64,000 nt of DNA from Podarcis muralis (GCF_964188315.1 NC_135667.1:15562001-15626000), one strand, 5' to 3'. Positions 13,809 through 53,915 are shown, counted from the first letter of the stretch. Notes: generated by a model from the letters alone, not told the origin. Numbers and translations are program-made.

Positions 13809-13889
13809 ATTCAGTACAAAGGGAAGGCATGAGATCATTCAATGCATGCAACTGGATCCCCTGGGATAGATCTCTCCATTTCTGCAGCC

Positions 13890-14170
13890 TCAGCTCCATT
13901 CAAGGTCCGCAATAAGGAACCTGTTTTTGGCCTTCAATGCCTTGTAGAGCTGATCCTTGCAATAGTGGTTCCAGCCAGGCACCAGCGTGTAAAGTTCCCT
14001 CATTTTTTCTTGGTTAGTTTCCCTTGAAGAGATTTTTTGGTACTGTTCTTCATCCAGGATTTGGCCGTGCAGCATATCCAGGACTGCTGCAACGTTGGTG
14101 GTCCGCTGGATCAGCTGTTCCCGATACTGTTCAATGAAATGGCAGTCAGAGGAGCTGGATGGCGGAGCAT
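13890..14170 (-). CDS. Gene A terminal CARD exon (ASC/NLRP1-type)
   Basis: HFIEQYREQLIQRTTNVAAVLDMLHGQILDEEQYQKISSRETNQEKMRELY...LIADLEWS*. Confidence 0.93.
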
Positions 14171-17100: not shown

Positions 17101-20100
17101 CACTGAAGAGGTGTATACTCAAGTTCACATGAACTATTCAACTAACATTTATTATTTATTAGATGTATATCCTGTCCTACCTCCCAAATGACTAATCTTT
17201 ACCCATTGAAATGAATTGACCCATTTGAAATGAATGGACCCTTTCGGTGGGTTTACTCTGAGTAAACGTTAGTCAAACCCAATGCTTGATGCTGATTTAT
17301 TGCCCTACTGTTCTCACAATCAAAATGGTTTAAGAGGGACAAGCATGTTACAAGTGGGGGAAAACAAGAGCTTAGGTTAGGAAGCCAAGTCTCCCTACTT
17401 CTCCCTCCCAACCCATGATAGTCAATCCCATTTAGGATTCTTGTTACAATGGTTATGGAAGCTTTCTCTTACCGTACCTGCAAGACACAAGAAGTGAGGG
17501 AGTTGAATAGCTGACACAGACTCGACTGGATCTGCTTGGATGTTGAGCAAAGGGCCGGCAACCATCAACTTCCATGCATCCCTCCTGTTCAGGTGTTTAG
17601 GCCATGAGTCAAATTGGTATGTGATGGTCACAGCTCCCCTCACCTCAAATATGAGATCAGTATAACAGCAACGGAAAGAGCCAGCCTCAGTAAAGCATAC
17701 CCTGAAAGCAAGCAAGAAAAAGTCAGATGGGGAAGGGGGTGGAACACATTCCTTTGCTGTTAAGAGAAATCATAACTATTGTCCTATGTGCTTGCTTGGT
17801 AAAACATATGTAGTAAAAGTTTAACACTGCCTGAAATTTGTGGTTATTCATCCTTGGTTTTCCTGCATCTGATATAGTAGCTGACCCACAGCTTCCTTGA
17901 AATACAGTAGATCTTGGTCACTGCTACTGATCTGCCACATAAATGTGCAGCTACATATGTAACCTGGGTGTGCTTTAGAGAACACCAACATTTATAATGA
18001 TTGCGAGACCCACATGAGGCGAGTCTACAGAACATTCCCTAGAAGGTAGGCTGAAAAATGTGTGAGATAAATTACTCACTTGTAGGATGCATGATTCCCT
18101 TGTAAATCCAGAACAACCTCTGGGTTGATTTTTCCTGGAAGTGCCTTTAACAAAGCAGTAATGATTAATATTGATGCCAATGCACACCCACACACCCACA
18201 CCCAATCTCATCTGAAAATAAGAATGTCCTTCTTCCCCAAAATCCTCAACAGGCAGTTTAGTGTAGGAGACATTCCATGAAGGTGGGCTGAATTTGAAGA
18301 ATTCCACTACAAGCTGAATGTACATTGATTAAAACATGTTAAAGCACCAGAAAAAAAGTGTGGATTTCAAATTGATAACATTCAGTGGACCGTCTGTAAA
18401 ATGTGAATAGGACTGATGATTCTACCCCCTAAACTAGAATCACAGTGTGATAGTCCAGAAAGTCAATTGCAATTCTATTTACTTCCATTGCCAACTGTAT
18501 GGAAACTGCTTTACCACTATCTATTGACACACACACAAACCAACACCAACGGCTCTAAAAGGTGTGGGATGTATTATTACTAGAGCAGCCAAGTACAACA
18601 TTTTCCTGTTGCCTAGAATGGACACACAGAGGAATGTGGCTCCCAGACAGAGAGGACTTCCTGTCATACCTGCTCTGGAGCTTCCTGCCCTTGTGTGTGA
18701 CCAGGTAGATGGGCATGGCCCTAGCTGACCAGATACAAGGGCTGGCCACCCAACCATCTCTCTCTTGGACTCCTGCTCTCCTGGCTCTCAGCCAACACAT
18801 GGCTCAACCTTCACATAGGATGGAGCCCAAAAGCCCACTGTAACCACTAGATAAAGCCTGCCTTCAGATTACTGCTGTGAACTGAATGTGAGCAAAACTT
18901 TATTCTTACTTTTAAAGAAGACTGTGTTGTGTTGTTATTATTTTAAGTGGGAAATAAAGTGGAAACTTACCAACAACAATCCAGACTGGACAAGGCAGAC
19001 TGGATTGCTTAATTAAATGATTCTAACGAATCATCAACTTGCTTCCAATAAAGTGCAAAGGGATTCCCCCCCCTTCCTTTTGTTTTCTCACTAGCGTGAG
19101 GAGGGATAATATCAAAAGTATATATCCTCTCCTACCTTCCTTAACATTCCCACAAACAGATTACTTTCCACAGTAAACTTGAATTTCAAGTTTGGTAGAT
19201 TCACCTTGAAAGTATCCATGTATTCCTCATTCCTGTGGGTGGTAATGCAAATTAGATTGAGTCCAGTCCCTTACCTTACTGGGACACCTGCTACACAGGA
19301 CACTTCCCCCAAAATCTGCAGTCTCATCTGTCTGACTACTGCTTTCTTCTTCTACAAACTGGGGTTTTTTCTCACCGCAGCACTGAGTGGGCAGGAATCT
19401 GGATTGAAATTTGATTCCACTCTGTAAAATAAGGACAATTATTTATAATCCCACATAGCTGTACTGTGAACGAAGGAGAAATTTCATTGTCCTTGAGGAT
19501 TAGGAAGAACCCTAAACCAAACTCACCTTGTGCTGCATTTTGTACGACCGCCTTTGTCTCCAATTGTCCATTTCTACGCATTCCACAAATTGGTGACAAG
19601 ATTTCATACCCCTTTCCTCAGTTCTAATCGGCAATTTGTGACCTTTCTCACATTCTTCGAAAATGTGTCCTGGGTCCTTTTCAGGAATTTTCCATAGATG
19701 TTTCCTTCCCGTGTGGATCATCTCATCACTAGACATTGTGACATTTTGCAAATTACCTGTTGTAGAAACGTTTGTTTGCTTGTTTGTTTGTTTTGACATC
19801 AGCAGAAAAAGAACGAGAACCTCAACAGGGTATGAGAAGCTTCCCTATACTGGATCCTACCGCTTGCCTGCCTAATTTCCCAGGGCCAACTTTCAAGGTC
19901 AAGTGACTCTCCAAGGCGGCAGATAGAGGCAAGTCTTTCCTAGCCCTGCTTGCTATTTTTCAAAAATAACTGTTGCAAAGGAAGGTTGAGTAAGAAAGTG
20001 TTCTTCAGAATAATGCATAGAAGAGAGATACAATATATTCGAAATGTCGTCCCTGCTGTTTAATGCCCATGTCGAGATGATGCAATGGAATAATGAAAGT

Positions 20101-20572
20101 GAGAAGGAGCGCAAAGCGGGGGATATAGGAAGAGAGGCAGGGGATTCCCAAGTCGTCCCTCCAATTTTGTCGCCACGCGCTTGTACAGCTGGACCCCGGG
20201 AAGCAAACCTCCCCTCTCCCGGCCAACGTTTCCATAGGAGATCCGGGCGAAGCAACGGCTCCCCTTCCCGAGGTCCTTACCTTGCCTGCTGCGGAGGCGC
20301 TTGTCCGCCTGGCGCCGGCCGTCGATGGTGCTCCGCGCCTCGGGCGCCACCTCCACGGCGCTGCTCTCGCAGGTGTGGCGGAGCAGCTCGACCGGGAACT
20401 TCTCCAGCTCGCCCTCCTCGGAGCGCGCCGGGGTGAGACTCAGGGGGCCACGGCTGGCGCCACGGAGCAAGCGGAGACTTGGCGGCCGAGATGCTCTGCA
20501 GGAGCGGAAGGAATCCTCTTCAGAGAAGCACCCGTCCCCAGCGCAGCTCAGAAAACATTTCACCGACAGCAT
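13890..20572 (-). CDS. Gene A: deleted-PYD - deleted-CARD - CxxC linker - FIIND - CARD protein (NLRP1/CARD8-like), ~610 aa
   Basis: Exons 20572-20281, 19756-19527, 19421-19275, 18144-18080, 17701-17478, 16381-16128, 15729-15601, 15126-14988, 14873-14838, 14318-14283, 14170-13890; all GT-AG, phases compatible, 1833 nt. Confidence 0.82.
14988..15729 (-). CDS. Gene A FIIND UPA exons (15729-15601, 15126-14988)
   Basis: AVHEYEVK...KPLKIGSRF and ELKLNY...ELVWKACVRH align with the NLRP1 UPA. Confidence 0.88.
16128..16381 (-). CDS. Gene A FIIND exon with autocleavage region (ENPKL-SPCG)
   Basis: IAHF...LQKPARV...HAVLENPKLSP...FHLYLLPNDSS vs NLRP1 MAHF...LEKPARV...ENPSFSP...FHLYLIPSDCS. Confidence 0.92.
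17478..17701 (-). CDS. Gene A FIIND ZU5 exon
   Basis: EAGSFRC...MVAGPLLNIQA...LPHFLCL vs NLRP1 VAGSYRW...MVAGPLLDIKA...LPHFVAL. Confidence 0.92.
18563..19154 (+). mobile_element. Older solo LTR related to the TGTGGGA family, in gene A intron 3
   Basis: tgtgggatgt...aataaa...aacattcccaca. Confidence 0.65.
19527..19756 (-). CDS. Gene A exon 2: CARD homologue with ~22-aa internal deletion
   Basis: SDEMIHTGRKHL...ERGMKSCHQFVECVEM aligns at both ends with the gene C CARD SDEMICKGREQL...ERGEQACCRFLECLEM. Confidence 0.75.
20281..20572 (-). CDS. Gene A exon 1: PYD homologue with ~29-aa internal deletion
   Basis: ELEKFPVE|LLRHTCESSAVEVAPEARSTIDGRRQADK vs gene B ELKKFKGEL...LLRHYDVDGAVEVAAKVLKAIDCQPQADK; same donor position. 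Confidence 0.72.
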
Positions 20573-27102: not shown

Positions 27103-28432
27103 CTGCAGAAGCAAGCAGGAAGGAGTGTCTCATTCCGTTGCCATTTCCAGTCCCTCTAGTTAGTGTGAGGGAGGCAGGGGGCTCAGCCTGAGGCCCAGAG
27201 TCCAGCCTGGAGCAGCCCCTGTTGCAATTCTTTCTCCCCACTTCTTCGCTACACTGCCGAAGGAACTCTTCTGGAGATCTCTTCAGCCCCTGAAGCTCTT
27301 TGAGGACTTCTTTTCTGCCTTGCACCAACCTATGCTTAGTGCTTGCTGGTTTTGCAGTGCTTTGTTTTTGCTGGACTGTTGAGAGAAAAGTTAGGGTGGG
27401 AAGAAGCTGAAAGAAAAGCTGAGGGGACACAGTTAAGTGACAGAGGATCGGGCTTGTGATATATATATATATATATATATGAATGAAACAACTGTGAGAT
27501 TTGGGCAATTTCCTGCCATTCTGTTGTGCTCCCATAACTCTGGTTTTCAGAAATAACTGTGACACTTTTTCTATCAATCTAAAACCAGAACTTATCTGAT
27601 TTAGGTTGAAAAACCTGTCAGCCTAAAATCCTTGTACGTTTTCTGATAGCTCACTGCTGATGACTGGGGTGTGTGTGTTTAAATGCTGCTCGATTTGGCA
27701 GTGGGCGTGCCTGTTCCCTACTGGTGCAGCCAAAGCAAGCAGTCCCCTTATTTTTAAGACACCTGCTTAGGGAGAGACATCTCCCTCATGCTGCTGGTGC
27801 TTGCAATAAGCAAGTTTCTTTCTCCCACTCTTCTCTGGTGATGGACAAAGTAGAAAAGGACAAGGCTCAGCCAGCAGCAACTGCTGATTTTGATGGCAAT
27901 GGATTGAGGATTAATTTTGTAAATTAAAATTTAAACCTCCTGACCCACACGTGTTTGAGAAACAGGCTGTGAAGCCCTTTTAGCAGAATAAAAAAACCCC
28001 TAATGCAGCTCACTTCAAGCTAGGAATTAGGCAATTGCACCTGTTTATTTGTGGTCAGCTGACCTCCCCTTCTTTGTCCTCATTGCTAAGAATGAACCAC
28101 ACGTTTTAGTAAGATAAACAAAAGAGAGCTCATGCAGGGGCAAATACATAATATTATTTCCTTTGTTGGAAATCCCCCCCCCCCAAAGCATTAAGGAAGT
28201 GACCTCATACGGTCCCTTCTTTATTGATTAAGGAACTGTATGAGCGTCAGCCCCTCATGTGCCTGTCTGGCAATCATGCATTTGTGATTTTGCCTGGAAA
28301 TCCCACAGCTTTGAGTAGATTCATGTATCACTTGCTTTCTGCCAACAATATTTGAACCCAAAAGGAAGAACTGAAGTCACATAGTACATGCAGTTGGAGT
28401 TCCTGTTGTCTCTCTTTGACTTCATTGTGGTC

Positions 28433-28725
28433 TCATTTCCCTTCCAGTTCATCAAAAAGATATGGATTTCTGTTCTTCAGTACTTTGTAAAGCAGATCCT
28501 TGCAATAGCGGTTCCAACTTGGCACCAGCATGTAGAGCGCCCTCATTTTCTCTTGGTTGGTTCCCTTCGAAGAGATAATTTCATACTGCTCATTATTCAG
28601 AATGGTGCCAAGGAGCATATCCAGCACCGCTTCAACGTTGCTGGTCCGCTGGATCAGCTCTTCCCGGTGTTGCTCAATGAAATGTTGTTTTGATGAGACT
28701 GACATTGGATAAGGTGGGCTTGCCT
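28433..28725 (-). CDS. Gene B terminal CARD exon
   Basis: HFIEQHREELIQRTSNVEAVLDMLLGTILNNEQYEII...CKDLLYKVLK...DELEGK*. Confidence 0.93.
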
Positions 28726-29979
28726 CTGTCAGACAAAAATAAAAGAAAATGCTCTTTTTAAAATATGGCTTCAGAGGATGTTTCAAGACAGTGAGCTCTA
28801 GAGAGAGGTGATCAAAGTAGAAGGCCTAGTTTGTCTTCAAGCTGTCCTGCCTCCCAGACATTTATGGCTGAGAATATGAGAAATAACCCATGGCATGTTC
28901 CAGAGGCACTGCTGAGGAACAGTGCAGTACTCTCTATGTAGCCACTAGCAGCTGGAAAAGAGAGAGAGAGAGGGAATGAGTAGATGCATGAAGCAAGCAG
29001 AGACTACAAGGATGACTTCCAAATCTCACTCTAAAATTTCCCATAGTGAATATGCACCATTCCAGATGTGCAACCCTGGGTAGGCTATTACTGCATTCCT
29101 ACTGACCTTCTGTTGGGTTAGAAGATTTCAGCTCTTCTGAAAGAGAACAGGGAAGATGCAGTCAGAGAGTGCATGTGGCCTTTTCAAGCTATGGTCTAAT
29201 CTTGCGGTCTTCCCTTGAGCAAAGCTCACCTTGTCTCACAAAGGCCTCCCAGATGAGTTCATCCTTTTTCTTCTCTATCAGGTTGAAGTGGAACTTATCT
29301 TGCCTGTGTTCAGCATAGAGTTCAAGGTACTGCTGCTCCATGTCTGCATGCAAATATTGAAGCTCCAGTTCCTGTGGGAAAGAGGGAAAGCTGTGTGACT
29401 ATGGCTTAGCCCATGGCCTACCAATTTTAAGGGGAGTAAATAAGAGGTTGAAGGGATCCTGGTTTAGCTGTCCCCTTCTCATACCACACAGACTCCCTCC
29501 AGGTAACACTTTCCATCATTTTTGCATCTTACCTTGGGGCAGATTTCGACATCATCTAACTTCTGCACAAAGAAGCGAGAGCCAATCCTCAGAGGCTTGA
29601 GGATGACAGAGGGTTTATCCAATCTCCACGAAGGGCATTTCTCTTCTTTCTCATGGACTGTCTGGGAAGCACAAACAGAGTGATTTTTGAGACATGCAAG
29701 GGAGATGCCAAGCTGCTAAGCCAATTCCAAGCCTCACCGCAGGGAAGACTTCCAAGTCAAGATGCTGCATAACCTGGCATAAAGGTATTTTCTTTACACA
29801 ATTCGATGACAACACTGTGTCTAGAGAAGAAGACAGTCATTTGGCTTCTGCCCAGCAAAGGAAAGGGGTTTATTTTTATACTGGATATTTGAATACTAAT
29901 GCTGGTTGGGGGCAACTGCTGATGTGGGTTCATGTTTGCTAGAACTTCAATCAATCAATCAATCAATCAATCAATATCT

Positions 29980-30010
<31 letters not shown>

Positions 30011-32169
30011 CAAGCACACCTTGATGAATGAGTTTGCCCACAGTTCTTGCATCTAATCATATTGCAAGTCTCGTGCCACTTAGCAGAGTGAAAGATTCCC
30101 AATTACCTTTCTTAGAGAAGAGTCGTTTGGGAGGAGGTATAGGTGGAATTTTTGAGCTGGAACTTCAAGCACTTGATAGAGCAGTGTGATGCAGTGGACC
30201 TTCATCTTCCGTTTAAACCAAGGCTTTTTGAAAACTACTCCACGGGAAGAGAACTTGGGGTTTCTCAACACAGCATGACGTGACCCCACTCTGCTTGGCT
30301 TTTCTAGACTCATCCCCTCTTCCACAAAATGTCCAATGTAGACTTGGGAGCTGTCCCCATCTGTAAAAAGAAGGAACACAAATGGAATATGGGTCAGTAA
30401 TAGGTAGCTTGCTTAGGGCAGTGGCTCTGGAGGTTATCTAAACATTTTTCAAAAAAATAATTTTTATTAAGAATTTCATCATAACAAATTATCAAAAACA
30501 TATCATCTTCATTTTCCCCATTTCCCCCTTCCCCCTCCCCAAGAAAAACCCTCCCTCCCTCCCCCCAAGACTTCCCTCAGCTCCTCTCTCTGATTTTTCA
30601 ACACATATTATTCTCTACATATTATAAACTTGTAAAGATCCTTAATTTATCTGTCTATTATGTTAGCAATAATAAATTTGTGTATGTTTATTCAAAACCT
30701 GCCAAGGAGTCCAGTTCATTTTGTTGTTGTTTTAAGTAATTTGTAAAATGTTCCCATTCTTCTTTAAAGCTAGATATCTCCTCCTGCACACTAGCCCTTC
30801 TCTTTTCCACACCAGCCCTCCTGGTAACAGCTCCTTCCTGTTTACCCGCCATCTCTGAGTCAAAACAGGTACTGTTGTACTTGACTGCTCCCAGTGGATT
30901 ACATCCCACACATGTTATATTCATTCCTCCAGTTACAGTTATACCATTGGAAGGTTCCCCACCCCCCTACCGTACCTGCAAGGCACAGGAAGTGAGGGAA
31001 GTGAACGGCTGCCACAGCCTCGAGTGGATCCGCTTGGATGTTGAGCAAAGGACCAGCGACAGACAACCTCCGTGCATCCCTTCCATTCAGGTGCTTGTGC
31101 CATGAATCAAAGTGGTATGTTACGGTGACACCCGCTCCCACCTCAAATATGAGATCAGTGTAGTAGCACTGAAAGGAGCCAGCCTCAAGGGAGCACAACC
31201 TGAATGCAACAAAGAGAAAGATGAAAGGAACAGTCATCAGTGCAGCTCATCTCACAACTATTAATATGTACGGCCTGCATGTTCTTCTCATACTAATGAC
31301 AATGTAGTAAAAGTTCAATACCGCCTGCATGTTCTGCTTCTTTGCTATTGGCTCATCTGCATCTGATGCAGCTGTTGTGGGATGTGAAACACAAGAGCAG
31401 TCAAGTACAACATTCCTAGAGTGAACATGTTTACACATGGAGAGGAATGATTGTCCAGCCAGCAGGTAAACTTCCTGTTTCCTTCTGGGCTGGGACAGAC
31501 TTCCTATGTATGTGACTAGAGGTGGGCGTGGCCTCACCTGTGCAGGTAACGACAAAAGCACAGGGCAGGACAGCCATCTCTCTCTCTGTGTCTACTTTTG
31601 TCGAAGAAGCAACATCTGCTTAGCCAAAGATGCTCTCTTGGCCTCCAGCCAAGAGAGGACAAAGGGACTGTCTGTTTATGGGATAGTTTCCAGGTGTATG
31701 TTACTTTTCTAAGCTAAGTCTGCCTTCTGGGATCCGATTGTGAACAGAATGTGAGTAAACTTTTTATACTTTTAAATAAAACTGTGTCGTGTCTTATCTT
31801 TTATGAGGGAATAAGGGGGGAAATACCAGAACAGTTATTATAGAGGCTTTAGCGAGCCTGAGCAAACACATCTGCTGTGAGTTTAAAAAGGGGAATGTTA
31901 CCCTGCTAAATTGTGAACTTGTTTACACAAGTTGGAAAGGCTATAATCAAAACAATATATCCTCTCCTGCATCCCTGAACATTTCCACAGCTGTGTGGGT
32001 GGCAGACCTATGCAAATAACATATTGGAAGCTGTATGGGGATGAGGAGAATTGATTAGAAGGGTAAGGATAAGAAAATTATGGGCTCCCTTTGAAAGCTC
32101 TTTGCTACACAGTGGCCAAGTATAGGGACGAAGCTTTTAGTAAAGAGAATCTCCCAAGCAAACATCTTG

Positions 32170-32211
<42 letters not shown>

Positions 32212-34291
32212 CATTTTGTCATAGAGAAGTATTTTGGCTACAAGACTGCCCAGGAAGTAAGTAAGGCTTCTTACGGTACTGGAAAAAAATGCTTTTAAAT
32301 GCTGGAACTAACAAAAGGTTGTGTGAGTGACTCTTAGTAATTCTCTCAACCAGCCAAATCCAGTGAGCATGGGGAGGGCTCCAGTCTCCCTTCCATTACC
32401 ATGGCAGATAAGCTTTTCTGTAACAGAATTCACCCACTGCACAATCACAACATGCTGTCACAGATGTAAGCTGGTTATATGAAGACCATTAGACCCCAGA
32501 GATGTACCTAGGGTCTTTTGTGCCCTTGCAAGGAGCTGTATCAGCAACCCCACCCCCCTGCGAATCACGTTGCCTTTGTGCTGCAGTACGAGAAGGGTGG
32601 GAAACTTCTGTGTTTGATCTCTCTGAGATGCCGCCACACACACATATACATTGTATATTTCTGGGGTGATTTTGGGTATGCCTCCGTGAGACCCACATTA
32701 CTGAATGTGTTCTGTAGTACCTTTCCCAGAATTGCCAGCAGACAATTCAATGTTGAAAACATTATTTGAATGTAGAGATTGTAAAAAGATCTCACCTGTA
32801 GATTTCATGGTTCCTTTGTGAATCCCAAACCACATCTGGTATGATTCTCTCTGGAAGATCCTGTGGCAAAGCAGTAATGATTAATATTTAAGCCATACTG
32901 CCCATCCTATCTGAAAATATAGGCATTCTTATCTTCTTGCAGTGCCCTAGTTCCTACACCAAGGAGCATGGCTTGAGCCCCACCCTATAGAAACACTAAA
33001 TGCTATGTCACAGCATCTGCCTTTGGTGTTTGTTTTGGCAATGAGCTATAGTATGGTGATTACAGGCATTGTCTTTTCTTTTCTTTTTAATCTAGACTTT
33101 TCCCCAAAAATGTTTACAGAATATTTGCCATTCTTTCCAAAGATCTCAGTGTACTTACCAAAGGCAGATGTAACCCAAAAATATTAAATTACCTGCACTC
33201 TCTAGGTAAGGAAAGATGAGGATGGGTGGGTGTGCAAGGAAGTAGTGGACCAACATTTTGTAGCCATATCAATGCATTTGCATGCAGGTACACAGGAGTC
33301 AAGATGCACACCCTCCTCTTTAGTCAAAGAATTCCCTCCTGCTCCTTCAGACACTGGGGACATGTTGAAATCTGAAGAATTCTATTGAAACATGGGATTA
33401 TTGCAAATTGATAACATCATAGGATAGATCCCACACAGAACATTTCCACGCTATATACAGCAATCACAATAGGAGTGCGTGCAGTTGGCCATTTGCAGCT
33501 CACAACCAAAAAAACAATTATTTGTGTTGGAGACACCTGTCCATTCCAAGTACAGTGGTACCTCGGGTTACATACGCTTCAGGTTATAGACTAAATAGTA
33601 CTAAATAGTACCTAAATAGTACCTCAGGTTAAGCACTTTGCTTCAGGATGAGAACAGAAACCGTGCTCTGGCGGCGCGGCGGCAGCAGGATACCCCATTA
33701 GCTAAAGTAGTGCTTCAGGTTAAGAACAGTTTCAGGTTAAGAACGAACCTCCTGAATGAATTAAGTACTTAACCCGAGGTACCAGAGGTACCACTGTAAT
33801 TCGTGTTGAATAGCAACACCACAAACTTACCTAAGCTTGAAATTCAAATTCACAAGTTAGGTGTTAATAGGGGCTAATACAAACCAGGATGAGTCCAGCC
33901 CTTTACCTCTCTAGGACACTGGTAGCAAAATACACTTTTCCTGGAATTTGCAGGACTTGTCTTTCGGCACTGCCCTTTCTCTGCAAATAGAGGGGATTCT
34001 GATACTTGCACTGAGGACTCAGGAATGCCTGTAAAAACAAGGTCAGTGATTTATTTTCCCACATGGCTGCTGTGAAAATGAAGAAGCAAACCTTGAAGAT
34101 TAGAGAAATGTGAAGTGAATTTCACCTTGTTCTGCTTGTATGAAGAATAGGGGAAAGGCCTACTGAGTTCAGTGGGATGTACTTGCACCCACAGATTGGG
34201 ACTGTAAACCTTTGGGTCGTCAGGAAATGGAATGCAAAAAATAGAGATGGTACTAATTCGGTTGTTAACCCAATCTCTCTCTCTCTCTCTA

Positions 34292-34337
<46 letters not shown>

Positions 34338-36142
34338 CTCTTTGATAACACAGGCATCCTGACATGGATAAATCAAAGTGGGGAAATGGAAACGAGATGA
34401 TCTGAAGAGGGGTGGAACCCACAGCAATTTGCAATTTTGCTGTAAATTTTCATTGTTTATCTCATACTATAAATTCCTATTTATTCTATATTGAAAGTCA
34501 GACCTGATTACAAGTAGAAACCCCGATGAAACTACTTCTAACCTAGTAAAAGACATCTGCTCTTGGTCACAGGAGAAAACTGTGTCTGTTTGAGATCACT
34601 GGTTGTGTGCACCCATGTGTATTTGTAGTGTCATTTTTCAAAATAATTGCAAAGAAGGGGAAATGAATAAAGCATGAAAGAGGAATTGAGAGCTACAATG
34701 CAAAGATGATAAATAATGTTATTCTTGCCATTTAATGTCCATGTTGAAACGATGTGAAGAAATAATGTGAGGTGGAGGAAGGGCAAAGAGGGGCATTAAA
34801 AACTGCTTGAGGGTTGTTGGTTTTTTTACAACCAACTGAGGTATAAATTTTATGCAATAAAATAATATAAATATAGGAAGAGAGACCTGCGATTTCTGAG
34901 TCCTCCCTCCAATTGGTTAAGACACACTGAGAATGTAAATAATAAGTTTATGACAAACACGACCCAGCTAAAGAAACCTCTCTTCCTCCAGCCAACATTT
35001 CTTCATGAGGAGATAATCAGGCTCAAACAAATGTTCCCCTTTCCGAGGTCCTTACTTGCCCTTCCACGGAGAAGCTTGTCCGCCTGCGGCTGGCAGTCGA
35101 TGGCCTTCAGCACCTTGGCTGCCACCTCCACGGCACCATCCACATCATAGTGTCTGAGCAGCAGATGGCAGAGAGTCCAAGCACCACATTCCTGCAGCCA
35201 GTCCTGGGTGACCTGGAGATCGCCCATCGGAATGGAGAAATGGCAGAGTTCGCCCTTGAACTTTTTTAGCTCGGACTCATCTAAACTCTCCAGGGTGCAC
35301 GCCAGGAGACCATAGATGGCTCTAATATAGGTCAAATGGTGACCTGATAGCAGAAATGATTTCATTGGGAGCCCAGAATCCTTTTCAGAAGAGCTCCCAG
35401 GATGAACCTCAGGGGCCAGAGACTTCTCCAAGCACAGGGTACTGCAATTCCCCACCTGGATGCCTGAAAGGAAGCGGTTTTCTCTCCCAGAGTTCAAGTC
35501 ACCATAGATGTCAGCAGGTTTGTAGGCATCATTGGTGACGTAAGGGTTGTATCCTTCAAAGCCCAGAGCACCGAACAACGGGAAGTGTATTTGCCTCAGC
35601 TGGACTCTTGGCCTTTCAGAGTCATAAGTGCCAGAGAGGTATCCTTCAAGGTCTAGGGCATCCTCCGAGAAGATGTGTTTTTTTCTCCGCAACGCGCGTC
35701 TCCCCTTCCAAAAGGAAGTAACATCCCATTTGCCATCACAGACGCAATCCACAGGCTCCAGGGGATCCGCCGAGGGGGAGCAGACCTCCTCCCCCATTGC
35801 GCCCTGCCCCCCCACAGTCTCTGGGGCGTTCACGGAACGACTATAGACGGGGAGGATTTGGTGCCGCCGCGTCCACAGCATTCCACCGCCTGTGCTCAGA
35901 GATCTTCCAACGGCCCTGACCGACTCCTCTCTCCTTACCGGGCTGCTACTTCCTCTTCCCTCGGGCAGAGAAGCTCTGCGCCGATTTCTGTCCTCTGTCT
36001 GTGGGCCGCCCGCCCGCATTCTCGGTCGCGTGGCGTGTCGCGTCCGTAGAGAAGGAACCCCGCTTTCGACACCAGCGGACTCGACGGCGGGGACGGAGCC
36101 CGCGATTGCCGCGAGCACGTTCGAAGGGGCGTCTTCCTGCAT
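28433..36142 (-). CDS. Gene B: N-terminal extension - PYD - CxxC linker - FIIND - CARD protein, ~765 aa
   Basis: Exons 36142-35056, 33980-33907, 32860-32796, 31199-30976, 30360-30107, 29661-29533, 29371-29230, 29136-29107, 28725-28433; all GT-AG, phases compatible, 2298 nt. Confidence 0.86.
29230..29661 (-). CDS. Gene B FIIND UPA exons (29661-29533, 29371-29230)
   Basis: TVHEKEEK...KPLRIGSRF; ELELQY...ELIWEAFVRQ. Confidence 0.88.
30107..30360 (-). CDS. Gene B FIIND exon with autocleavage site (NPKF-SSRG)
   Basis: IGHF...LEKPSRV...NPKFSS...FHLYLLPNDSS. Confidence 0.92.
30976..31199 (-). CDS. Gene B FIIND ZU5 exon
   Basis: EAGSFQC...VAGPLLNIQA...FPHFLCL. Confidence 0.92.
31376..31989 (+). 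mobile_element. Intact 614-bp solo LTR
   Basis: TGTGGGATGT...AATAAA...ACATTTCCACA; exact 5-bp TSD gctgt. Confidence 0.88.
33553..33796. mobile_element. Tc1/mariner (Tigger-like) MITE; related copies near 22270, 42324-43455, 54563-54794
   Basis: TIR cagtggtacc/ggtaccactg flanked by TA. Confidence 0.8.
35056..36142 (-). CDS. Gene B exon 1: ~275-aa extension plus PYD
   Basis: 1087-nt open exon ending in LACTLESLDESELKKFKGEL...AVEVAAKVLKAIDC; phase-1 donor A|GTAAGG. Confidence 0.8.
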
Positions 36143-36361
36143 CTGATTTTCCCAAGCAGGAGCTCAACCCGCTCTGCTGCTACCTATCAGTCTTGTCCCG
36201 CTCTTGCTTCCTCCTAGTCAGAAGGAGGAGTGTCAGAAAACCCCCGGGGGGCGGGCTCCTCCGAGGTCGCCTTCCTATCCGTAGCTGTCAACGTTTCCCT
36301 TTTTAAAAAGGAAATTCCGTTATTCAGAATAGGATTCCTCGCAAGAAAAGAGAAAAGTTGA

Positions 36362-36770
36362 CAGCTGTCGTTTAGTCGCGTCCGACTCTTCGTGACCCCC
36401 CTGGACCAGAGCACGCCAGGCACTTCTGTCTTCCACTGCCTCCCGCAGTTTGGTAAACTCACGCTGGTAGCTTCGAGAACACTGTCCAACCATCTCGTCC
36501 TCTGTCGTCCCCTTCTCCTTGTGCCCTCCATCTTTCCCAACACCAGGGTCTTTTCCAGGGAGCCTTCTCTTCTCATGAGGTGGCCAAAGTATTGGAACCT
36601 CAGCTTCACGATCTGTCCTTCCAGTGAGCATTCAGGGCTGATTTCCTTCAGAATGGAGAGGTTTGATCTTCTTGCAGTCCATGGGACTTTCAAGAGTCTC
36701 CTCCAGCACCAGAATTCAAAAGCATCAATTCTTCTGCGATCGGCCTTCTTTATGGTCCAGCTCTCACTTC
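36362..36770 (-). mobile_element. BovB (RTE) LINE 3' fragment
   Basis: SILKEISPECSLEGQIVKLRFQYFGHLMRR...GRQRTRW is a BovB ORF C-terminus. Confidence 0.9.
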
Positions 36771-37173
36771 CAGCTATGCTTGACAGCTATGCCTCTGGAT
36801 TTTTTCGCTGGCAGCGGATTTGTGGCAACGCCGACAGAGAATTTATGGCAGTGCTTTTTTCTAAAAAAATGTTTAGGGGTACTCTCATTTTAACTCAAGA
36901 AAACCATCATTTTATTGTTCAAATTGGGGAAAATTAAATACAGTAAATGGACAAAAGTACAAAGATTCACAAAATGTTTAGGGGTATGCATGCCCCTGCG
37001 GCCTCCCCAGAAAAAAAGCACTGATTTATGATATTAAAAGGAAATCTGAGGTGGAGTCTTTTCCCCAGTTTTGAATATCAAAGGTTGTCATAAGACTCAC
37101 TGCAGGTAAAGCAAGCAGGCAAACAAAAAAAGCAGAATATATCTGTGGAAACATGGATAGTGGAAAGCAAGCA

Positions 37174-40459: not shown

Positions 40460-40740
40460 TCATTGCCCTTCCAGGTCTTTCACGAGATGTGGGTTTTGGG
40501 CCTTCAGTGCCTCATACAGCATATCCTTGCACCGGAGGTCCCAGCTTGGCAGAAGCCTGTAGAGCTCTCGCATCTTGTCTGGGTTAGTTTCCTTGGCAGT
40601 GATTTTTTGGTATTGCTCCTCACTGAGGACGGAGCCATGCAAACTATCCAGCACTGGTTCCACTGGGATGGTCCGTTGGATTAACTCCTTCCTGTGCCGC
40701 TCAATGAAGTGCACTTTGGAAGAGTTTGGAAACTGCGGCC
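40460..40740 (-). CDS. Gene C terminal CARD exon
   Basis: HFIERHRKELIQRTIPVEPVLDSLHGSVLSEEQYQKITAKETNPDKMRELY...KDLEGQ*. Confidence 0.93.
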
Positions 40741-43069
40741 CTACTGGGAAAGAGAGAAAGAGAGAATCTTGCTAAAGGTTCACACCACAGGCTTAAGACT
40801 GGTTCCCCAACTCATTCCTTCTTCCCCCATGACCTGGGAATTGTAGTTCCATGAGGGGAGGGATCATGAACAGAGCATTCCCAGTAGCTCACCTGCCTAA
40901 AATTCCCAGAATTCATTGGGCAAAGCCATAACTGTTGAAGAAGTATAAAACTGAAATAAGTGAGAGCTGTTGGAAGGGAGCCAAGGCTGGGGCCAGCCCT
41001 ACGATTAGGGAGAGTGAGGTGGCATCATAATTTGGGGTATCATAAACGACAGCAAATTGTCAGGCAATTAATTCATTACTATTTCACATAGTATTATATT
41101 TAGCTTTATCTTTTCTTACTTTAAAGCCCAGGAATTGATAGAGGGTGGGACTGAATGACACTTGGAACCCCTCCAAACTCTACCAATTCTATGCTTCTAC
41201 TATTGTTGTTATCATTACTGAACCCAGCTTTCTTCCACAGAGGCAATTTTCCTCACTATCCAAATTCCACTATCCCCATATGGCCTAGGACCCTCATACT
41301 TATGGGACCTCCTCTCCTGGTATGCCTCGCGGAGGACCTTACAGTCCACAAACAATAACACCTTGGAGGTCCCGGGCCTCAAGGAGGTTAGACTGGCCTT
41401 CTCGGCCCTGGCCCCAGCCTGGGGGAACGCTATGTCGCAAGAGACCAGGGCCTTGCGGCACTTGACATCTTTCTGCAGGGCCTGCAAGATGGAGTTGTTC
41501 CTCCAGGCCTTTGGTCTGGGCCCAGTCTGACCCCCCTCTTTTTACAAGACCCTGCATGTAAGTGACCTCTCTCACTCCTCCAGCCGGGTCATATAAGACC
41601 AGTACAAATAACTGGGCCTGGTGAGCACTTAATGTTCCCAACCCCTATAGTTATAATTCGTGGGTTGCCATCATTCTGATCTTAACTTGTTTTTAAGCTG
41701 TATTTTAATCGATTGTTTGACTTTATGTTTTAATGTACTATATACTTTGATGTTAGCCACCCTGAGCCCAGTCCTGGACAGGGAGGGCTGGATATAAATA
41801 AAATTGATGATGATGATGATGATGCCATGAAAACCTTATCCACAAGGCCTCTGTCCTTGGAAGAAGACAAAGTTATGGAACGTTGTCTCACAGATTTATG
41901 AATTATGCTTACAGTATCACTTAATCACAAATGACAACAAGAGCAAGTAACAGTTCATATTTTAGGAACTGCCACTCACTTTAAAATTGAGAAGCTCACA
42001 CTGTAAAACCTAGAGTGAGGAGATCAATGTCAGCAAAAGCTGTTCTGCTTGCCGGATGGAACAATTCTCTTAGTTTCCCTCTGAACTGTGTTCTGCGGAT
42101 TATTGTGACCCTCCAGAGAGGACTTGAGGGAGAGGGACAAGGAGGATATTGAGGAGAAAGTCCCATTGCATTAGTGGGAGCCCTTCTGATGCCATGTCAG
42201 GTTAGTTGCATCTGGGTAAAAAATGTTCTTAAAAACCTAGGTGAGTTGAAAGATCTTCATCTGGCGCCAAACAAAACAATAAGCCCAGACAACCTTGTCT
42301 AAGAAGGCTGTTGAATAAAGTTACAGTGGTACCTTGGTTCTCAAACTCAATCCGTTACGGAAGTCGGTTCCAAAACCAAAGCATTCCAAAACAAAAGGTG
42401 CACTTTCCCATAGAAAGCAATGCAAAATGGATTAATCCATCCCAGACTTTTAAAAACAAGCCCTAAAACAGCAATTTAACATGAATTTTACTATCTAACG
42501 AGATCATTGGTCAATTAAATGAAAGCAATAATCAATGTAAGGTAAGGTAAGGTAAGGTAAGGTAAGGTAAGGTAAGGTAAGGTAAGGTAAAGGGACCCCT
42601 GACCATTAGGTCCAGTCGTGACCGACTCTGGGGTTGCGGTGCTCATCTTGCTTTATTGGCCAAGGGAGCTGGCGTACAGTCATGTGGCCAGCATGACTAA
42701 GCCACTTCTGGCGCACCAGAGCAGCGCACGGAAACGCCGTTTACCTTCCCGCTGGAGCGGTACCTAATTATCTACTTGCACTTTGATGTGCTTTCGAACT
42801 GCTAGGTTGGCAGGAGCAGGGATCGGGTAATGGGAGCTCACCCCATTGCGGGGATTTGAACCGCTGACCTTCTGATCGGCAAGTCCAAGGCTCTGTGGTT
42901 TAACCCACAGTGCCACCCACGTCCCTAATAATCAATGTACTGTACTATAAAAAAAGTAAGACAGTATTGTAGATGATTAAAAAAATAATAATTCTTACCT
43001 GCACTGATGATAGCCATTGTTTGGATGGGGGGCTTTTATCCATTTCTGCAGTCACACAATCTATCTATC

Positions 43070-43124
<55 letters not shown>

Positions 43125-46100
43125 ATCTATCTATCTATCTATCTATATCTATCAGTAGCTGAATTGGGTTCCACACAGTCACAAAAACAAATTAACCGGA
43201 AAAGCCTCAAAAACCAAAATGCAAAATAAATAGCAGAAACAAAAGTGCCAAACTTAATCCATTCCGAAAGTCTGTTTAACTTCCAAAATGTTTGAAAACC
43301 TAGGCGCAGCTTCTGATTGGTGCAGGCGCCCCAGAAACAATAGCCGACAGCCGCATCAGATGTTCGGTTTCCGAAAATTGTTCGAAAACCAGAACATTTA
43401 CTTCCGGGTTTTTGGCATTTGAGAACCTAGGCATTTGAGAACCAAGGTACCACTGTACAAAAGTTATTTTTCATTTTTGTGCAGTGTATGTTCTACTGTA
43501 TCACCAGCACTTCCTATTGGGAGGAAGATAAGATACAAGTACAATGAAAGAAACAACTAAAACCTGCTGACCTTGTGCTGGGTGTATAATAGGAGAAGCC
43601 ATCTGCCCTGAAGTTAACTCATCTGAAAATCAAGAAGAAAAAGTCAGTCAAAGAGGGAATGTGACCTGTGGTCCTTTTCCATCCTGCCTCCCAAGATATG
43701 ACTCAACCTCACGATCATCCCTTGTTCAAAACTCACTTTTTTTTAAATGGGCCTTCCAAACAACTTCAGTCGTGCCCTTCTTCATCAGGTAGAAGTTGAA
43801 CTTCTCTTGCATTTGTTCAGCAGACAGTTCTACATACTGCTGCAGTTTCTCTGCATCCAGGTATTGAAAATGCAGTTCCTGTGGGAAAGAATGAAACCTC
43901 TGTAGGTGTGAATCTGGTTTGGCCCAACCCACCATTCCAAGGGAGTCAGATTAAAGGGTGAAGAAGGATCCTCGTTGAATTTCTCCCATTCTCAGACTTC
44001 ACAGTCTTGGTTCTGCCCCATCAAAAAACCACCATCATCTTCATGTCTCACCTCAGGATTCACTGTGACATCCTCTGGAGTACTAAGAGAGACCTGAGAG
44101 CCAATCATCAGAGGTTTCAGGGTCACAGGGGGTTTCTCTATTCTCTTTGAATTTACTTCACGCTTATCGACCGCCTGGGAAGGGTAAAGAAAGTCACTTT
44201 TGACATACGCAGAGAGGGAACAAAATTTTTGGAAGACTAGATGCCTACAACATTCTTGGCATTGTAGCACCAGGTAATGCAGGAATGGGGAACCTGGTGT
44301 CCTCCAGATGTTGTTGGACTCATATCCTTCCCAACAAGCATGGGCCAAGGATGATGGGTTTCATAGTTCAAGAACATCTGCAGAGACACAGATTCTCCAT
44401 ATGCAATATAAAGAAAATTAAACCACTATGACAATAGAAACTAAAATGTGGAGTGGAGATTTCCTGGCCTCATGAGGAACTGAAGGAAGCCAAGGCTCTT
44501 GGACTGGGCAGCCTGGACTATAAAGTGGCCAAGAGGTACCATGAATCCTGGGTCCACCTGCATCTTCTCTTGATGAGACCATGCAGGAAACCACAGAAGC
44601 CATGAAACTTCATTATTTGAATGAAGCATAAGAAGACATTTTAAGGAAAAGTTTAAATTGAGAAGGCAATATGATAGTGTGCTTTATCTCCCATGTGCCA
44701 ACACTGCAAATCAGGAAGAATGTTTTTCCTCAGGAGTTATCTGAGAAAGCTCGTTACTACCAAGCTGATTCCTTAATGAACGAAGCAGTATTTGTTCATT
44801 GCTAAATACGTTTACTCTGAAGGAAGTGTTACTGATTTCAATGAAGGCTTCCAGGAGAATGTGCTTAGGATTTCACAAGTAAGTGACGACCCGTTTGTTT
44901 AGAGAACCAGACAGGCTGTGTAACAAATGAAAAGGGCATATTTCAATATTGGAAGAATCACTTTAAACCAACAGTGCCGGTGGGAAGCTAAGTAACCCAG
45001 CATTGGGCAACTTGTTAATCTTCTCTCTACTGGCATGTTGATGTTGGGTAGAAGAGATCAAGTCCAACAATTGTGCATAGTCGGGGTTAATATGATCAAG
45101 CAAATGATCCAGACAATCGGGAATACCAGAGATGGAGGTTCCTGGTTACCTTTATTATTGAAGGGTCATTGGGCAGAACGTACAGGTGAAATGTTGGCGT
45201 TTCCAGCTGAAGCCTATGATAGAGCAGTACGACAGTGTTGATCTTTTGCTTAAACCACTTTTTGAAAACGACTCCTAGGGAAGAGAACTTGGGGTTTTCC
45301 AACACAGCATGGTGAGGCTCCACTCTGTCTGGCTTCTCCAGCCTCATCTCCCCTTCAACAAAATGTGCAATGTAGACATGGGAACTGTCATCACCTGAAA
45401 AGACAAGCATGTTAGAAGTGGGAAAGTGACAAAAATATCATCACTTAACCCTCCCTATTTCATGCAAGTATTCATTTTCTCATTGTACTGTAATTTAAGA
45501 GGTTTATAACATCATTTCACAGGACAATATGCTTGCATGGCAGCTTAAAACAGAATGCAAATCACAGAAAATAATAAAACAGCACAGTTGGAACATTTTG
45601 AAAAATTGAAACAAATAACAAAAGTCTGGTATGCCAGCACTCCTGACCTCTAGAACCCACCCATAGCATTCTGGAAACATCAATGGACATTTAGGACTCC
45701 TCCTATTATGGTTATAATGCTGGAAACTTCTCCCCTGACATACCTTCAAGGCACAAGAAGTGAGGGATGCAAATGGATGCCACAGCCTCTGCTGCATCCA
45801 CCTTAAAGTTGAGCAGAGGGCCAGCGACATGCAACTCCTCAGTGTTCTGTTCTGCCAGGAGCTTCGGCCATGAATCAAAGTAGTATGTTAAGGTCACAGC
45901 TTCTTTCACTTCACATATGAGACCAGTATCATCGCACTGGAAGGAGCCAGCCTCAGTCGAGCGCACTCTGAATGGCACAAAGAGAAAGACGAAAAGGAAA
46001 AGGGGACCCCACTCGGTGTACCTTGGGATCTCAAATTTCAGCAGCTCCCTGAGCAATGCCAAAATTCAGCACCTTACCCATGCCTCTCGCACTCCATTCT

Positions 46101-49100
46101 GAATAATAGTTGTGGCATCTCCTGCAGAGACCCTCAGGCTCCACAGCTGAACTGGCCGTGCTCCCCTAAATTTGCCTTTGAATAGCTGACATTAGGGTTG
46201 TTGAACCAAACTGTGGGAATGTTGAGGGTGGCAAGAGAGGGTATATTGATTATTAATATCCTAACTTGCCCTAGCAAGTTTCTTTATTTAGCAAAGTGCA
46301 TTCTCCTTCTTACACAGCAGAAACTGGCTGCAGACTCGTGTGAGTCTCTTAAGACTATAGGCAATTCAATCTGGCTTGTCCAGATTGAGATGTATTCTAT
46401 TATTCCTGGTAAGACCCCTTTAGGTAAAGGTAAAGGACCCCTGACAGTTAAGTCCAGTCAAAGACGACTCTGGGGTTGCGGTGTTCATCTTGCTTTACTG
46501 GCCGAGAGAGCCGGCATTTGTCCGCAGACAGTTTTTCTGGGTCATGTGGCCAGCATGACTAAACCGCTTTTGGCAAAACCAGAGCGGCGCACGGAAATGC
46601 CATTTACTTTCCCACCAGAGCGGTACCTATTTATCCACTTGCACTTTGACCTGCTAGGTTGGCTGATTAAAGACCCCTTTAATCCCTCCTAAAAGAATAA
46701 AGACACTGCAGTCTTATTCATAAGTGCTAAAAAGTCGTTTACTTACATTCAAAGAGAACACGGTGTGAATCCTGAAGGCAGGCTTAAGGCTTAAAGTTAC
46801 AAGTATGTACAATGTGCATTTACCCCATATTGGGGAATAACCCAGTGCTGGCTGAGAGCCAGCAGTGCAGTCCAAGCTGGAAGCAGGTCAAAGGTGAAAG
46901 GTGAAAGAGAGAGGACGGGTGCATGACTTGGCCTCTTATCAGGTCTGGTAAGGTCACAACCACCTGCTAGTCACATGCAAGAGGAAGGATGCTCCAGCCA
47001 AGTGGACCCAACATTCCCCTGCATGTCCACTCTAGCAAAACAGGCAATGTTGTACTTGACTGCTCTGGTGGATTACATCCCACAAAAACTAGTAGAGAAG
47101 AACAAGATAAATTGATTTTGGGGCAATGGCAATAATGCCAAGGAAGGGACAGGGGACAAGAGGAGCTGAAATGACTCCCTTGCTTCAAGAAACTCATTGG
47201 GTTATCTTGGGCCAGTCACTGCCTCTTAGCCTAAAGTACGGTACCTCACAGAGTTGTGAGGGGAAAATGGAGAGGGGAAAACCATGCATGCCAACTTGAA
47301 CTCCTTGGGAGAAAGGTGGAATATTTTTAAGGAAGAGAAACAACAATTCCTCCAAAAATCCAAACTCCATATTTTTCACCTTTCTCAAACTCTGCATCCT
47401 TCTTTTGATGCTACCCCAACCTGAAAAGGGGGCGGGATATATACAACTGGAAGTTAGCAACAGCAGTGCTTCAATGTAATGTTTTTTTCCAGCTCTGCTC
47501 CATGGAACCAAGGAATTCCTCAGTGAAGACATCAGGAATGGTGGTTAAGCTTCCTTCAGAGAGAATTTGTCCACCACAACTGACCGTTCACTGCAATATG
47601 CAGATCACAGATGTACTCTGCGTAAGTTTTACCGAGAACCACCATATGTGGTGACTGTGAGACCCACAGAAACCAGATGTGCTCTGTTGGACAATTCAAA
47701 GTAGAAACCACTCCCTGAGGGGAGAATGTTTCAAAAGGTCTGAGAGAGATAGAGATGATAGAGATAGAGACAGAGATAGAGATAGAGAGATAGCGAGAGA
47801 GAGAGAGATCACACACCTGTAAGCTTCATGGCCCCTTTCTGAGTCCCAAACCACCTCTGGTTTTATTTTTTCTGGAATATCCTATAATGAAACCATAATC
47901 ATTCATGTAGATGCCAGAATCCATATCCCATCTGGAAACGGGGCATTATTGTCTGTTCCTAAGACCCTTGAGACCACACCCTTCTAAAACAGATGTGACA
48001 CAGGAAGATTCCACACTAAACCGGAATCACAGCATTAGAGTTCTGCAGTAGTGCAATGATCTTTTTAGATGGAAAGTGTTTAAGCACTGGAAAATATGGG
48101 ACGATTTGAAATGTGACATCAACTGGACCGCCCGTAAGGTAAGAGCGAGGCAAGATGATTCCCGACTAAATGGAAACACAGTGTGCTAAGTGTGCATTGC
48201 AATGACTCTCACCATGAGTTATTAGCACAAGGAAAAAGCTGTTTAGATGCAGCCTTATTTCCTGCTACCAGACTCTAGCTTTGAATAACAAATATGTAAA
48301 TAATTACCTAAGATGGGATAGTTGCTAACCTTAGGGGACTAGAAATTTAAATTCAGTGGCTTCACGTTAAAAATATCAACGTGTACCCTATTCCTGTGGG
48401 TGGGAAATGCACATCAAGACAGGTCAGTCCCTTACCTCACTGGGACACCGGCCACACGGCACACTTTCCCCAGAACCTGCTGAGTTCTCCATCTTCATGC
48501 TTCCTTCCCTCTGTAAATATGAGCAAAGCAAGATGATTCCCAACTAAATGTAAGCACAGCAAGGCAAGAAGATTCCACATGAAATTGGAATCACATAATT
48601 ACAATTGCGCAGAAATGCAATGCTTTGTTTTTTATTATTTTTTTAAGCACTAGGAGCAACCTGTTTGGAAACAGCCTTGTGGCTCAATACCAGCAATTAG
48701 TGCCGACTAGCAAGATGATTAATTAATGTACAAAAATACCTAAAGAGGGACAAGGGCTTTTTACAGTGCACAAGAAATTCAAATTCAGAACCTTTCTGTT
48801 AGAAGTACCAATATAGGCTTCATTATCATGGGTGGTCAATGCAAATGAGAAGAATGCCCACCCTTTACCTCACTGAGACACCAGTTGCTTGTGATAATCT
48901 CCCCAGAACCTACTGGGTTCTCCATCTTCATGCTTCTTTGTTCCCCTTCATATAAGGGGGATTCTGAGTGTGGTGCTGTAAAAGAATGACAATTATTTGC
49001 CTGCTATGACTTTTGGAAGTTGGTTTGCAGGGTGAACACATAAAAATACAGTATTTCTTAAGAACCCATAGGATGTGAAGAGTAGCGCCTTGTGTGAGGC

Positions 49101-53856: not shown

Positions 53857-53915
<59 letters not shown>

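Follow-up and report, generated by a model that had tools for sequence, protein, structure and literature searches.

A PYD-FIIND-CARD gene of the lizard Podarcis muralis as a candidate NACHT-less NLRP1/CARD8-type sensor

We analysed a 64,000-nt stretch of Podarcis muralis DNA (GCF_964188315.1, NC_135667.1:15562001-15626000; hereafter the window) and find that its minus strand carries a gene, gene B (36142 to 28433), in which a PYD exon is joined through two small exons to a FIIND (ZU5-UPA) and a C-terminal CARD, with neither NACHT nor LRR. Gene B is a member of a large family of FIIND-CARD genes without NACHT or LRR in tetrapods other than mammals. On balance, and at somewhat better than even, we favor the view that it encodes a NACHT-less sensor of the NLRP1/CARD8 type with an exchangeable, fast-evolving N-terminal bait or sensing part, and not a polymerising adaptor of the ASC type. 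An original prediction, made from the sequence of positions 28433-35400, had described the gene as effectively an ASC-like adaptor with a self-cleaving FIIND in its hinge. The domain order that it proposed holds, the start codon of the RefSeq model (ATG 36142) lies outside its span, and the adaptor role is weakly supported by the evidence given below.

Exon structure and domain order

Gene B comprises nine exons, every one of them with AG/GT borders (GT-AG introns). Its features are as follows.

35366-36142, minus strand: upstream in-frame open reading frame (ORF) of exon 1, the N-terminal 259 residues of the RefSeq protein; coding status uncertain
35056-35365, minus strand: PYD-coding part of exon 1, with an internal ATG at 35365, a Pfam PYRIN match at 35305-35084 and six helices in the AlphaFold2 (AF2) model
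33907-34028, minus strand: exon 2, 122 nt, linker with a C-x-x-C motif; RNA joints, present in the RefSeq protein, borders kept in congeners
32796-32860, minus strand: exon 3, 65 nt, lead-in to ZU5; RNA joint 32794/31197 in runs X1 and X5
30976-31199, minus strand: exon 4, main part of ZU5 with the PHF histidine at 30994-30992; Pfam FIIND, 84.2 bits
30107-30360, minus strand: exon 5, end of ZU5 and start of UPA, with the cleavage site; alignment to NLRP1 1178-1261, RNA joint 30976/30360 in run X1
29533-29661, minus strand: exon 6, UPA; in frame, AG/GT borders, no indels in congeners
29230-29371, minus strand: exon 7, end of UPA; weak Pfam UPA-FIIND match on the ORF, full UPA match (554-671) on the RefSeq product
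29107-29136, minus strand: exon 8, 30 nt, alternatively included (EELKSSNPTE); in isoform X1 (781 residues), not in isoform X2 (771 residues)
28433-28725, minus strand: terminal CARD exon, stop TGA at 28435-28433; Pfam CARD, 71.4 bits

Pfam searches of single exons and of the whole product give the order PYD, linker, ZU5-UPA and CARD. On the 781-residue RefSeq product the scores are 40.8 bits for PYRIN, 131.7 for FIIND (PF13553, residues 418-545), 77.3 for UPA-FIIND (PF23679, residues 554-671) and 66.4 for CARD, and the PYD exon by itself reaches 44.8 bits for PYRIN. When the exons are assembled from ATG 35365 they read 1569 nt in frame, or 522 codons without a stop. As had been proposed, a phase-1 PYD exon ending at 35056 (CAA|GTAAGG; donor GT kept in two congeners) and two small exons lead in frame into ZU5, UPA and CARD. 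The PYD lies about 57 residues from ZU5, and roughly 330 residues of linker and FIIND separate it from the CARD. The claim that the intervening introns hold no long ORF is also upheld: introns 1, 2 and 3 (1027, 1046 and 1596 nt) contain no domain-bearing ORF, and tblastn with five full-length NACHT-LRR-FIIND proteins found no NACHT or LRR coding sequence in the window, matching only its PYD, FIIND and CARD pieces. An internal CARD exon relic in intron 1 was sought because it would indicate a PYD-CARD-FIIND-CARD ancestor like the neighboring gene C; intron 1 holds no protein-level trace of one, and only 34135-34050 matches gene C (53187-53087). Exon 3 has paralogous copies elsewhere in the window (52303-52205 and 47881-47816), and an Rfam scan of 28000-36800 gave no match.

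Gene B is already present in RefSeq as “caspase recruitment domain-containing protein 8-like”, with the products XP_077774064.1 (781 residues) and XP_077774065.1 (771 residues); the latter lacks the 30-nt exon 8 and otherwise uses the same exons, including the acceptor at 34028. The RefSeq start, ATG 36142, is 259 codons upstream of ATG 35365 in the same exon, and the translation of 36142-35366 matches residues 1-259 of XP_077774065 at 100% identity. This N-terminal extension has no protein match outside Podarcis. In the AF2 model residues 1-266 have a predicted local distance difference test (pLDDT) score below 50 and no secondary structure, in a part of the alignment that no homolog covers, and the model thus suggests that the extension is probably disordered. 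A six-helix PYD follows at residues 267-362 (pLDDT 82-96), and PYD, ZU5, UPA and CARD are all modelled as folded, with low-confidence linkers between them.

RNA evidence

RNA reads were mapped over positions 30000-35999 under a bridging rule of 31 nt. In these data the PYD exon is spliced toward the FIIND through the acceptor at 34028. A single 434-nt contig of run X5 (depth 6.8) takes in 216 nt of exon 4, then exon 3 and all 122 nt of exon 2, and reaches 30 nt into the PYD exon, with joints at 31197/32794 (cut +2), 32859/33906 (cut +1) and 34027/35055 (cut +1), where CT..AC corresponds to GT..AG on the minus strand. Run X1 supports the joints 30360/30976 and 31197/32794, and one of its contigs extends 272 nt beyond exon 5, the summed length of exons 6 and 7; the junctions from exon 5 to the CARD exon are drawn from splice consensus, the RefSeq model and the length of this contig. 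The PYD exon had been predicted to join at 35056/33980. Its splicing is borne out, and the acceptor has to be corrected, for both the RNA contig and RefSeq use 34028. The two acceptors are both in frame; with the one at 34028 exon 2 measures 122 nt instead of 74, a gain of 48 nt and 16 residues.

Coverage is uneven across the gene. Run X1, which has the best-covered and spliced FIIND exons, has no coverage of the PYD exon. Eight other RNA runs, all from the same two studies, cover part of the first exon, and none of them is among X1-X4, the top-ranking runs for the whole gene. In X5 the depth over introns is about equal to that over exons.

Some contigs run unspliced into introns. An X5 contig (34985-35207) crosses the exon 1 donor; with intron 1 retained, exon 1 reads 17 codons further to a stop and yields a 379-residue PYD-only ORF (36142-35003). 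The P. raffonei annotation has a separate 387-residue PYD-only gene at the same place (L001:6804-9026). One X1 contig has exon 4 spliced to exon 3 and then continues into intron 2 up to 33047, and another covers 33099-33574. The intron 2 piece in X1 has 10 mismatches to the window in 254 bases and may therefore stem from another allele or copy. Read from the sequence, a PYD-less transcript that starts in intron 2 has no in-frame ATG ahead of Met257, which is inside ZU5, and so would not encode a cleavable FIIND.

The FIIND is predicted to cleave itself

FIINDs undergo autoproteolysis, and NLRP1 and CARD8 are activated by degradation of the N-terminal fragment. Sequence comparison predicts self-cleavage of the gene B FIIND well. 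Exon 4 aligns to CARD8 188-256 and NLRP1 1104-1174, and its PHF histidine corresponds to CARD8 H252. Exon 5 finds its best match in NLRP1 (1178-1261, 54.6 bits), such that the histidine of GHF (30331-30329) falls on H1186 and the glutamate of LEKP (30304-30302) on E1195, a residue that we take to have a role in cleavage. The putative cleavage pair, Phe 30253-30251 and Ser 30250-30248, is F536|S537 in the 781-residue protein and F277|S278 in the 522-residue model; its context NPKF|SS aligns in register with NPSF|SP of NLRP1 (F1212|S1213). Both exons match the solved FIIND chains of CARD8 and NLRP1 by sequence. In an alignment of 23 relatives H494, H510 and the Phe-Ser pair do not vary at all, and E519 hardly varies (781-residue numbering). 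The F-S site (30253-30248) and both histidines are thus intact, as had been claimed. In CARD8, H252 and H270 are required for processing (PMC3210808).

Because the cleavage residues are invariant in the family, self-cleavage into an (N-terminus)-PYD-linker-ZU5 part and a UPA-CARD part is a reasonable expectation, in line with the original prediction. That prediction had further supposed that the PYD is released as a regulator; this part is not supported, since the PYD would stay on ZU5 and the established NLRP1/CARD8 route degrades the N-terminal fragment.

The linker ahead of the FIIND contains a C-x-x-C motif (33921-33932 in exon 2; residues 397-400) about 20 residues before the domain, in a segment predicted to be disordered. 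The motif is shared by 21 of the 23 relatives, with lizards, turtles, alligator and frog among its carriers, and we know of no role for it.

An ASC/NLRP1-type CARD and a divergent PYD

The two end domains had both been called ASC/NLRP1-like. This is right for the CARD, which by sequence is of the ASC/NLRP1 type: among PDB sequences it scores 80.3 bits to the ASC CARD (over 87 residues), 78.6 to the NLRP1 CARD and 29.4 to the CARD8 CARD. It is not right for the PYD, which by the same comparison is divergent and not of the ASC type. Its best match among solved structures is NLRP4 (22.8 bits), with ASC at 16 bits; by comparison, another PYD exon of the window (1837-2097) reaches 71.5 bits to ASC, and the PYD of the skink homolog has ASC as its best match (45.5 bits). 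In the alignment to ASC, four of six residues that we take to be needed for PYD filament formation (E13, K21, K26, R41, D48 and D51) are changed in gene B (K26E, R41Q, D48G and D51T), and E13 and K21 are kept.

Constraint among Podarcis species

The orthologous loci in two congeners, P. raffonei and P. lilfordi, were compared with gene B and are colinear with the window at about 95-96%. None of the nine exons has an indel in any of the three species, and all splice sites are kept, including the acceptor at 34028; exon 8 is identical in both congeners. The ratio of nonsynonymous to synonymous differences (pN/pS) comes to 2.1 and 0.9 in the PYD (7N:1S and 6N:2S), 0.25 in UPA, 0.18-0.38 in the CARD and 0.59-0.72 over the whole gene, a pattern which suggests that selection guards the effector end (UPA-CARD) and that the PYD changes at a near-neutral rate.

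The start of the protein differs among the species. P. raffonei has lost ATG 35365 (M1I) and keeps the upstream frame open via indels of +9 and -87 nt. P. lilfordi has a TAG at PYD codon 51 (Q51*; window 35215-35213) and a frame-breaking gap of 103 nt in the upstream ORF (equivalent to window 35700-35800), the rest being intact; its deposited gene model spans the PYD stop with an intron. In the P. raffonei annotation the locus is divided between two genes, one PYD-only and the other a partial FIIND-CARD gene.

Spread of the layout and literature

To place gene B among its relatives, we classified about 220 collected proteins by local profile searches. Among complete forms, PYD-ZU5-UPA-CARD with no space for a NACHT occurs most often (29 proteins, and five more with several PYDs), whereas FIIND-CARD alone accounts for 26 and NACHT-type proteins for only a handful. 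Carriers of PYD-FIIND-CARD include skinks, agamids, iguanians, lacertids, an amphisbaenian, sea and pond turtles, an alligator and a frog; examples are Tiliqua XP_066485328, Pogona XP_072832982 and Sceloporus XP_042331066 among lizards, and Dermochelys XP_043373197, Alligator XP_014381809 and Pyxicephalus XP_072273254 beyond them. Ducks, swans and grouse have PYD-CARD-FIIND-CARD. All these are automatic models named “NLRP1-like” or “CARD8-like”. The statement that neither NLRP1 nor CARD8 has the layout therefore holds for the mammalian proteins, and the uniqueness that it implied does not, given a RefSeq gene and the commonest complete form among relatives.

Across the family, variable N-terminal modules (one to four PYDs, CARDs in varying number, or PYD-CARD) precede a constant FIIND core, which is followed by a CARD and sometimes by a PYD. 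A tree of the FIIND cores groups them mostly by animal group and not by end domains, and sister FIINDs can carry different ends, as with a Zootoca PYD-FIIND-CARD beside a P. muralis PYD-FIIND-PYD; the end domains thus appear to have been shuffled often on a stable core. The FIIND of gene B is sister to a PYD-FIIND-CARD unit of Rhineura (SH-aLRT 97), which suggests that this domain order dates back to the split of lacertids and amphisbaenians and has been kept since. In the Rhineura model, PYD-FIIND-CARD units are joined directly to a PYD-CARD unit.

Two further groups of relatives were seen. Many lizard proteins carry a terminal PYD where others have a CARD, as FIIND-PYD, PYD-FIIND-PYD or PYD-CARD-FIIND-PYD (P0005, P0009, P0012, P0018, P0037 and others), and their released effector would be UPA-PYD. 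In the bird set (P0092, P0124, P0191 and P0192), residues 1-174 of the grouse protein are colinear with full-length human ASC isoform 2 (77 bits).

ASC has been reported lost in birds, and an anole CARD8 with a C-terminal PYD has been described (PMC11258412). An anole gene named “NLRP1-like”, LOC100556846, is reported to have a PYD and a FIIND without NACHT or LRR and to lie in the PYCARD region, with Fus and Trim72 on either side (PMC13076529, Fig. 4 legend, and its bioRxiv preprint, 10.1101/2025.06.19.660630). BIR-FIIND-CARD proteins are known from Xenopus (PMC13159474). The FIIND study of D'Osualdo 2011 deals with mammalian sequences only (PMC3210808), and a fish NLR review and a FIIND autoinhibition paper describe only NACHT-containing NLRP1 and CARD8. 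A literature search with the phrase “PYD-FIIND-CARD” matched no paper. The gene and its layout are thus already in public annotation, catalogued in many sauropsids and a frog, yet functionally uncharacterised; the supposition that the architecture is not already well characterised holds for its function only.

Proposed mechanism and competing explanations

By homology with NLRP1 and CARD8, we propose that the FIIND of gene B would cut itself between Phe and Ser and that the UPA-CARD fragment would then be held by ZU5. Pathogen activity or cellular stress would lead to destruction of the N-terminal piece (“functional degradation”, as in NLRP1 and CARD8), and the freed UPA-CARD would polymerise through its ASC/NLRP1-type CARD and recruit ASC and/or caspase-1. 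The probably disordered extension, the divergent PYD and the linker would together form the fast-evolving, exchangeable sensing or bait end. A number of observations weigh against this sensor model. The PYD side of the X5 bridge is 30 nt long, one short of the 31-nt rule, at a depth of about 7; expression of gene B is low, and two deep raw-read runs (X19 and X20) are empty over every exon, their reads falling solely on an interspersed repeat (about 33550-33785). Either ATG 36142 or ATG 35365 may be the start. The residue ahead of F|S is Lys, as compared with Ser in the mammalian SF|S motif. The substitution counts behind pN/pS are small, too few to separate neutrality from positive selection. 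An adaptor role may exist elsewhere in the family, because the skink homolog keeps an ASC-like PYD. Lastly, no functional study of any PYD-FIIND-CARD protein was found in the literature.

We judge it unlikely that gene B is decaying as one copy of a tandem array under birth-and-death evolution, with a relic PYD, weak expression and little or no function. The whole-gene pN/pS, the PYD stop and upstream frameshift in P. lilfordi, the split annotation in P. raffonei, the silence of two deep runs with low contig depth elsewhere, and the neighboring gene A, which retains only a 34-residue PYD remnant, would all fit such decay. It sits poorly with nine indel-free exons whose splice sites are kept in three species, with purifying selection on UPA and CARD, with intact self-cleavage residues, with correctly spliced transcripts in two studies, and with a layout that appears to have persisted since the split from the Rhineura lineage. 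The ASC-like adaptor of the original prediction, in which the PYD would join NLRP3/ASC filaments, the CARD would recruit caspase-1 and FIIND cleavage in the hinge would act as a switch, strikes us as quite unlikely, even with an ASC-type CARD, a confidently predicted PYD fold, ASC-like PYD exons close by, the Rhineura model, an anole PYD-FIIND gene at the PYCARD locus, the ASC-like skink PYD, and bird relatives with a colinear ASC-like PYD-CARD ahead of FIIND-CARD where ASC is reported lost (PMC11258412). The PYD of gene B is distant from ASC and has lost four of the six filament residues named above; its pN/pS is about 1 to 2, it is interrupted at codon 51 in P. lilfordi and has lost its internal ATG in P. 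raffonei, and run X1 splices the FIIND exons with zero depth on the PYD exon. Moreover, cleavage would put PYD and CARD on separate polypeptides that are joined only non-covalently.

It is very unlikely, in turn, that the locus makes separate products, namely a PYD-only protein by read-through of intron 1 and a PYD-less FIIND-CARD transcript from intron 2. The unspliced X5 and X1 contigs, the first-exon runs that exclude X1-X4, the lack of PYD-exon depth in X1 and the P. raffonei PYD-only gene point in that direction. However, the PYD-less transcript lacks a suitable ATG before Met257, the mismatches in the X1 intron piece may betray another allele or copy, the near-exon depth of introns in X5 fits pre-mRNA or DNA carry-over, and a spliced PYD-to-ZU5 contig exists. 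We give similarly little credence to a broader scheme in which PYD-FIIND-CARD and the bird PYD-CARD-FIIND-CARD proteins would be self-cleaving adaptors, born at the PYCARD locus, that link PYD sensors such as NLRP3 to caspase-1 and replace ASC in birds, gene B being a lizard member. If true, this would define a second, switchable class of adaptor; as birds are reported to be without ASC, the fused ASC-like module of the bird proteins may bear on what replaces it.

To our knowledge, all that is known of FIIND proteins comes from mammalian NLRP1 and CARD8. The usual FIIND protein of lizards, turtles, crocodilians, birds and frogs has death-fold domains directly ahead of the FIIND and is apparently functionally unstudied, and gene B offers an RNA-supported example with exact exon borders and a predicted cleavage site. 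A guarded UPA-CARD with a drifting PYD fits the sensor model, in which FIIND-CARD would serve as a general degradation-triggered alarm with exchangeable bait domains.

Neighborhood of gene B

The window is a tandem array on the minus strand, in which we noted the following as side observations.

13899-20386, minus strand: gene A, FIIND-CARD with a 34-residue PYD remnant
40463-57914, minus strand: gene C, with PYD, PYD, CARD, two FIINDs and CARD
1837-2097 and 11027-11284, minus strand: two ASC-like PYD exons with repeat-rich ORFs after them

The first-exon region of gene B, which is rich in GC (36113-35907), resembles 20789-20583 at gene A (74% alike). An interspersed repeat of about 225 nt occurs in two copies of opposite orientation that are 81% alike (33551-33784, minus; 54566-54770, plus). 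Every RNA run covers it at very great depth (word depth up to about 2x10^5); it has no Rfam match and is probably an element resembling a short interspersed nuclear element. ORF tails of a BovB/RTE-type reverse transcriptase from a long interspersed nuclear element lie at 36217-36786, directly upstream of exon 1 of gene B, and at 13526-13810, both on the minus strand.

Comparison with known systems

The other PYD-FIIND-CARD proteins are the closest counterparts of gene B. They share its domain order by Pfam at 496-626 residues, align to it end to end at 44-62% identity, and have the same invariant self-cleavage residues and C-x-x-C motif. They differ in that the PYD of gene B is weaker (Pfam 40.8 bits, against 59.7-72.3 in skink and agamid) and that the 259-residue extension of the RefSeq model is found in Podarcis only. 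Anole LOC100556846 likewise joins a PYD to a FIIND with no NACHT or LRR, but it is described without a CARD, in a figure legend and a short passage that contain no functional work.

Human CARD8, after which RefSeq names gene B, has the same FIIND and C-terminal CARD without NACHT or LRR, the same F|S autocleavage site and conserved ZU5 histidine, and an N-terminal region with no nucleotide-binding module. Gene B differs from it in having a folded PYD ahead of the FIIND, a Lys in place of Ser before F|S, and a CARD far nearer to those of ASC and NLRP1 (80 and 78.6 bits) than to that of CARD8. For this last reason direct recruitment of caspase-1 in the manner of CARD8 is not to be assumed. When NLRP1 of human and rodents is considered, the human protein likewise has a PYD at its start and FIIND-CARD at its end, its CARD is of the same type, and exon 5 matches it best, with H1186, E1195 and F1212|S1213 in register; gene B, in contrast, has no NACHT or LRR and places its PYD within about 57 residues of ZU5. 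With ASC (PYCARD), gene B shares the possession of one PYD and one CARD, a closely similar CARD, and a setting in which ASC-like PYD exons lie nearby and an anole relative sits at the PYCARD locus. However, ASC is a single uncleaved chain with a short flexible linker, whereas gene B has about 330 residues with a cleavable FIIND between its two death-fold domains, and its PYD scores 16 bits to ASC, has lost K26, R41, D48 and D51 and shows no detectable purifying selection in Podarcis.

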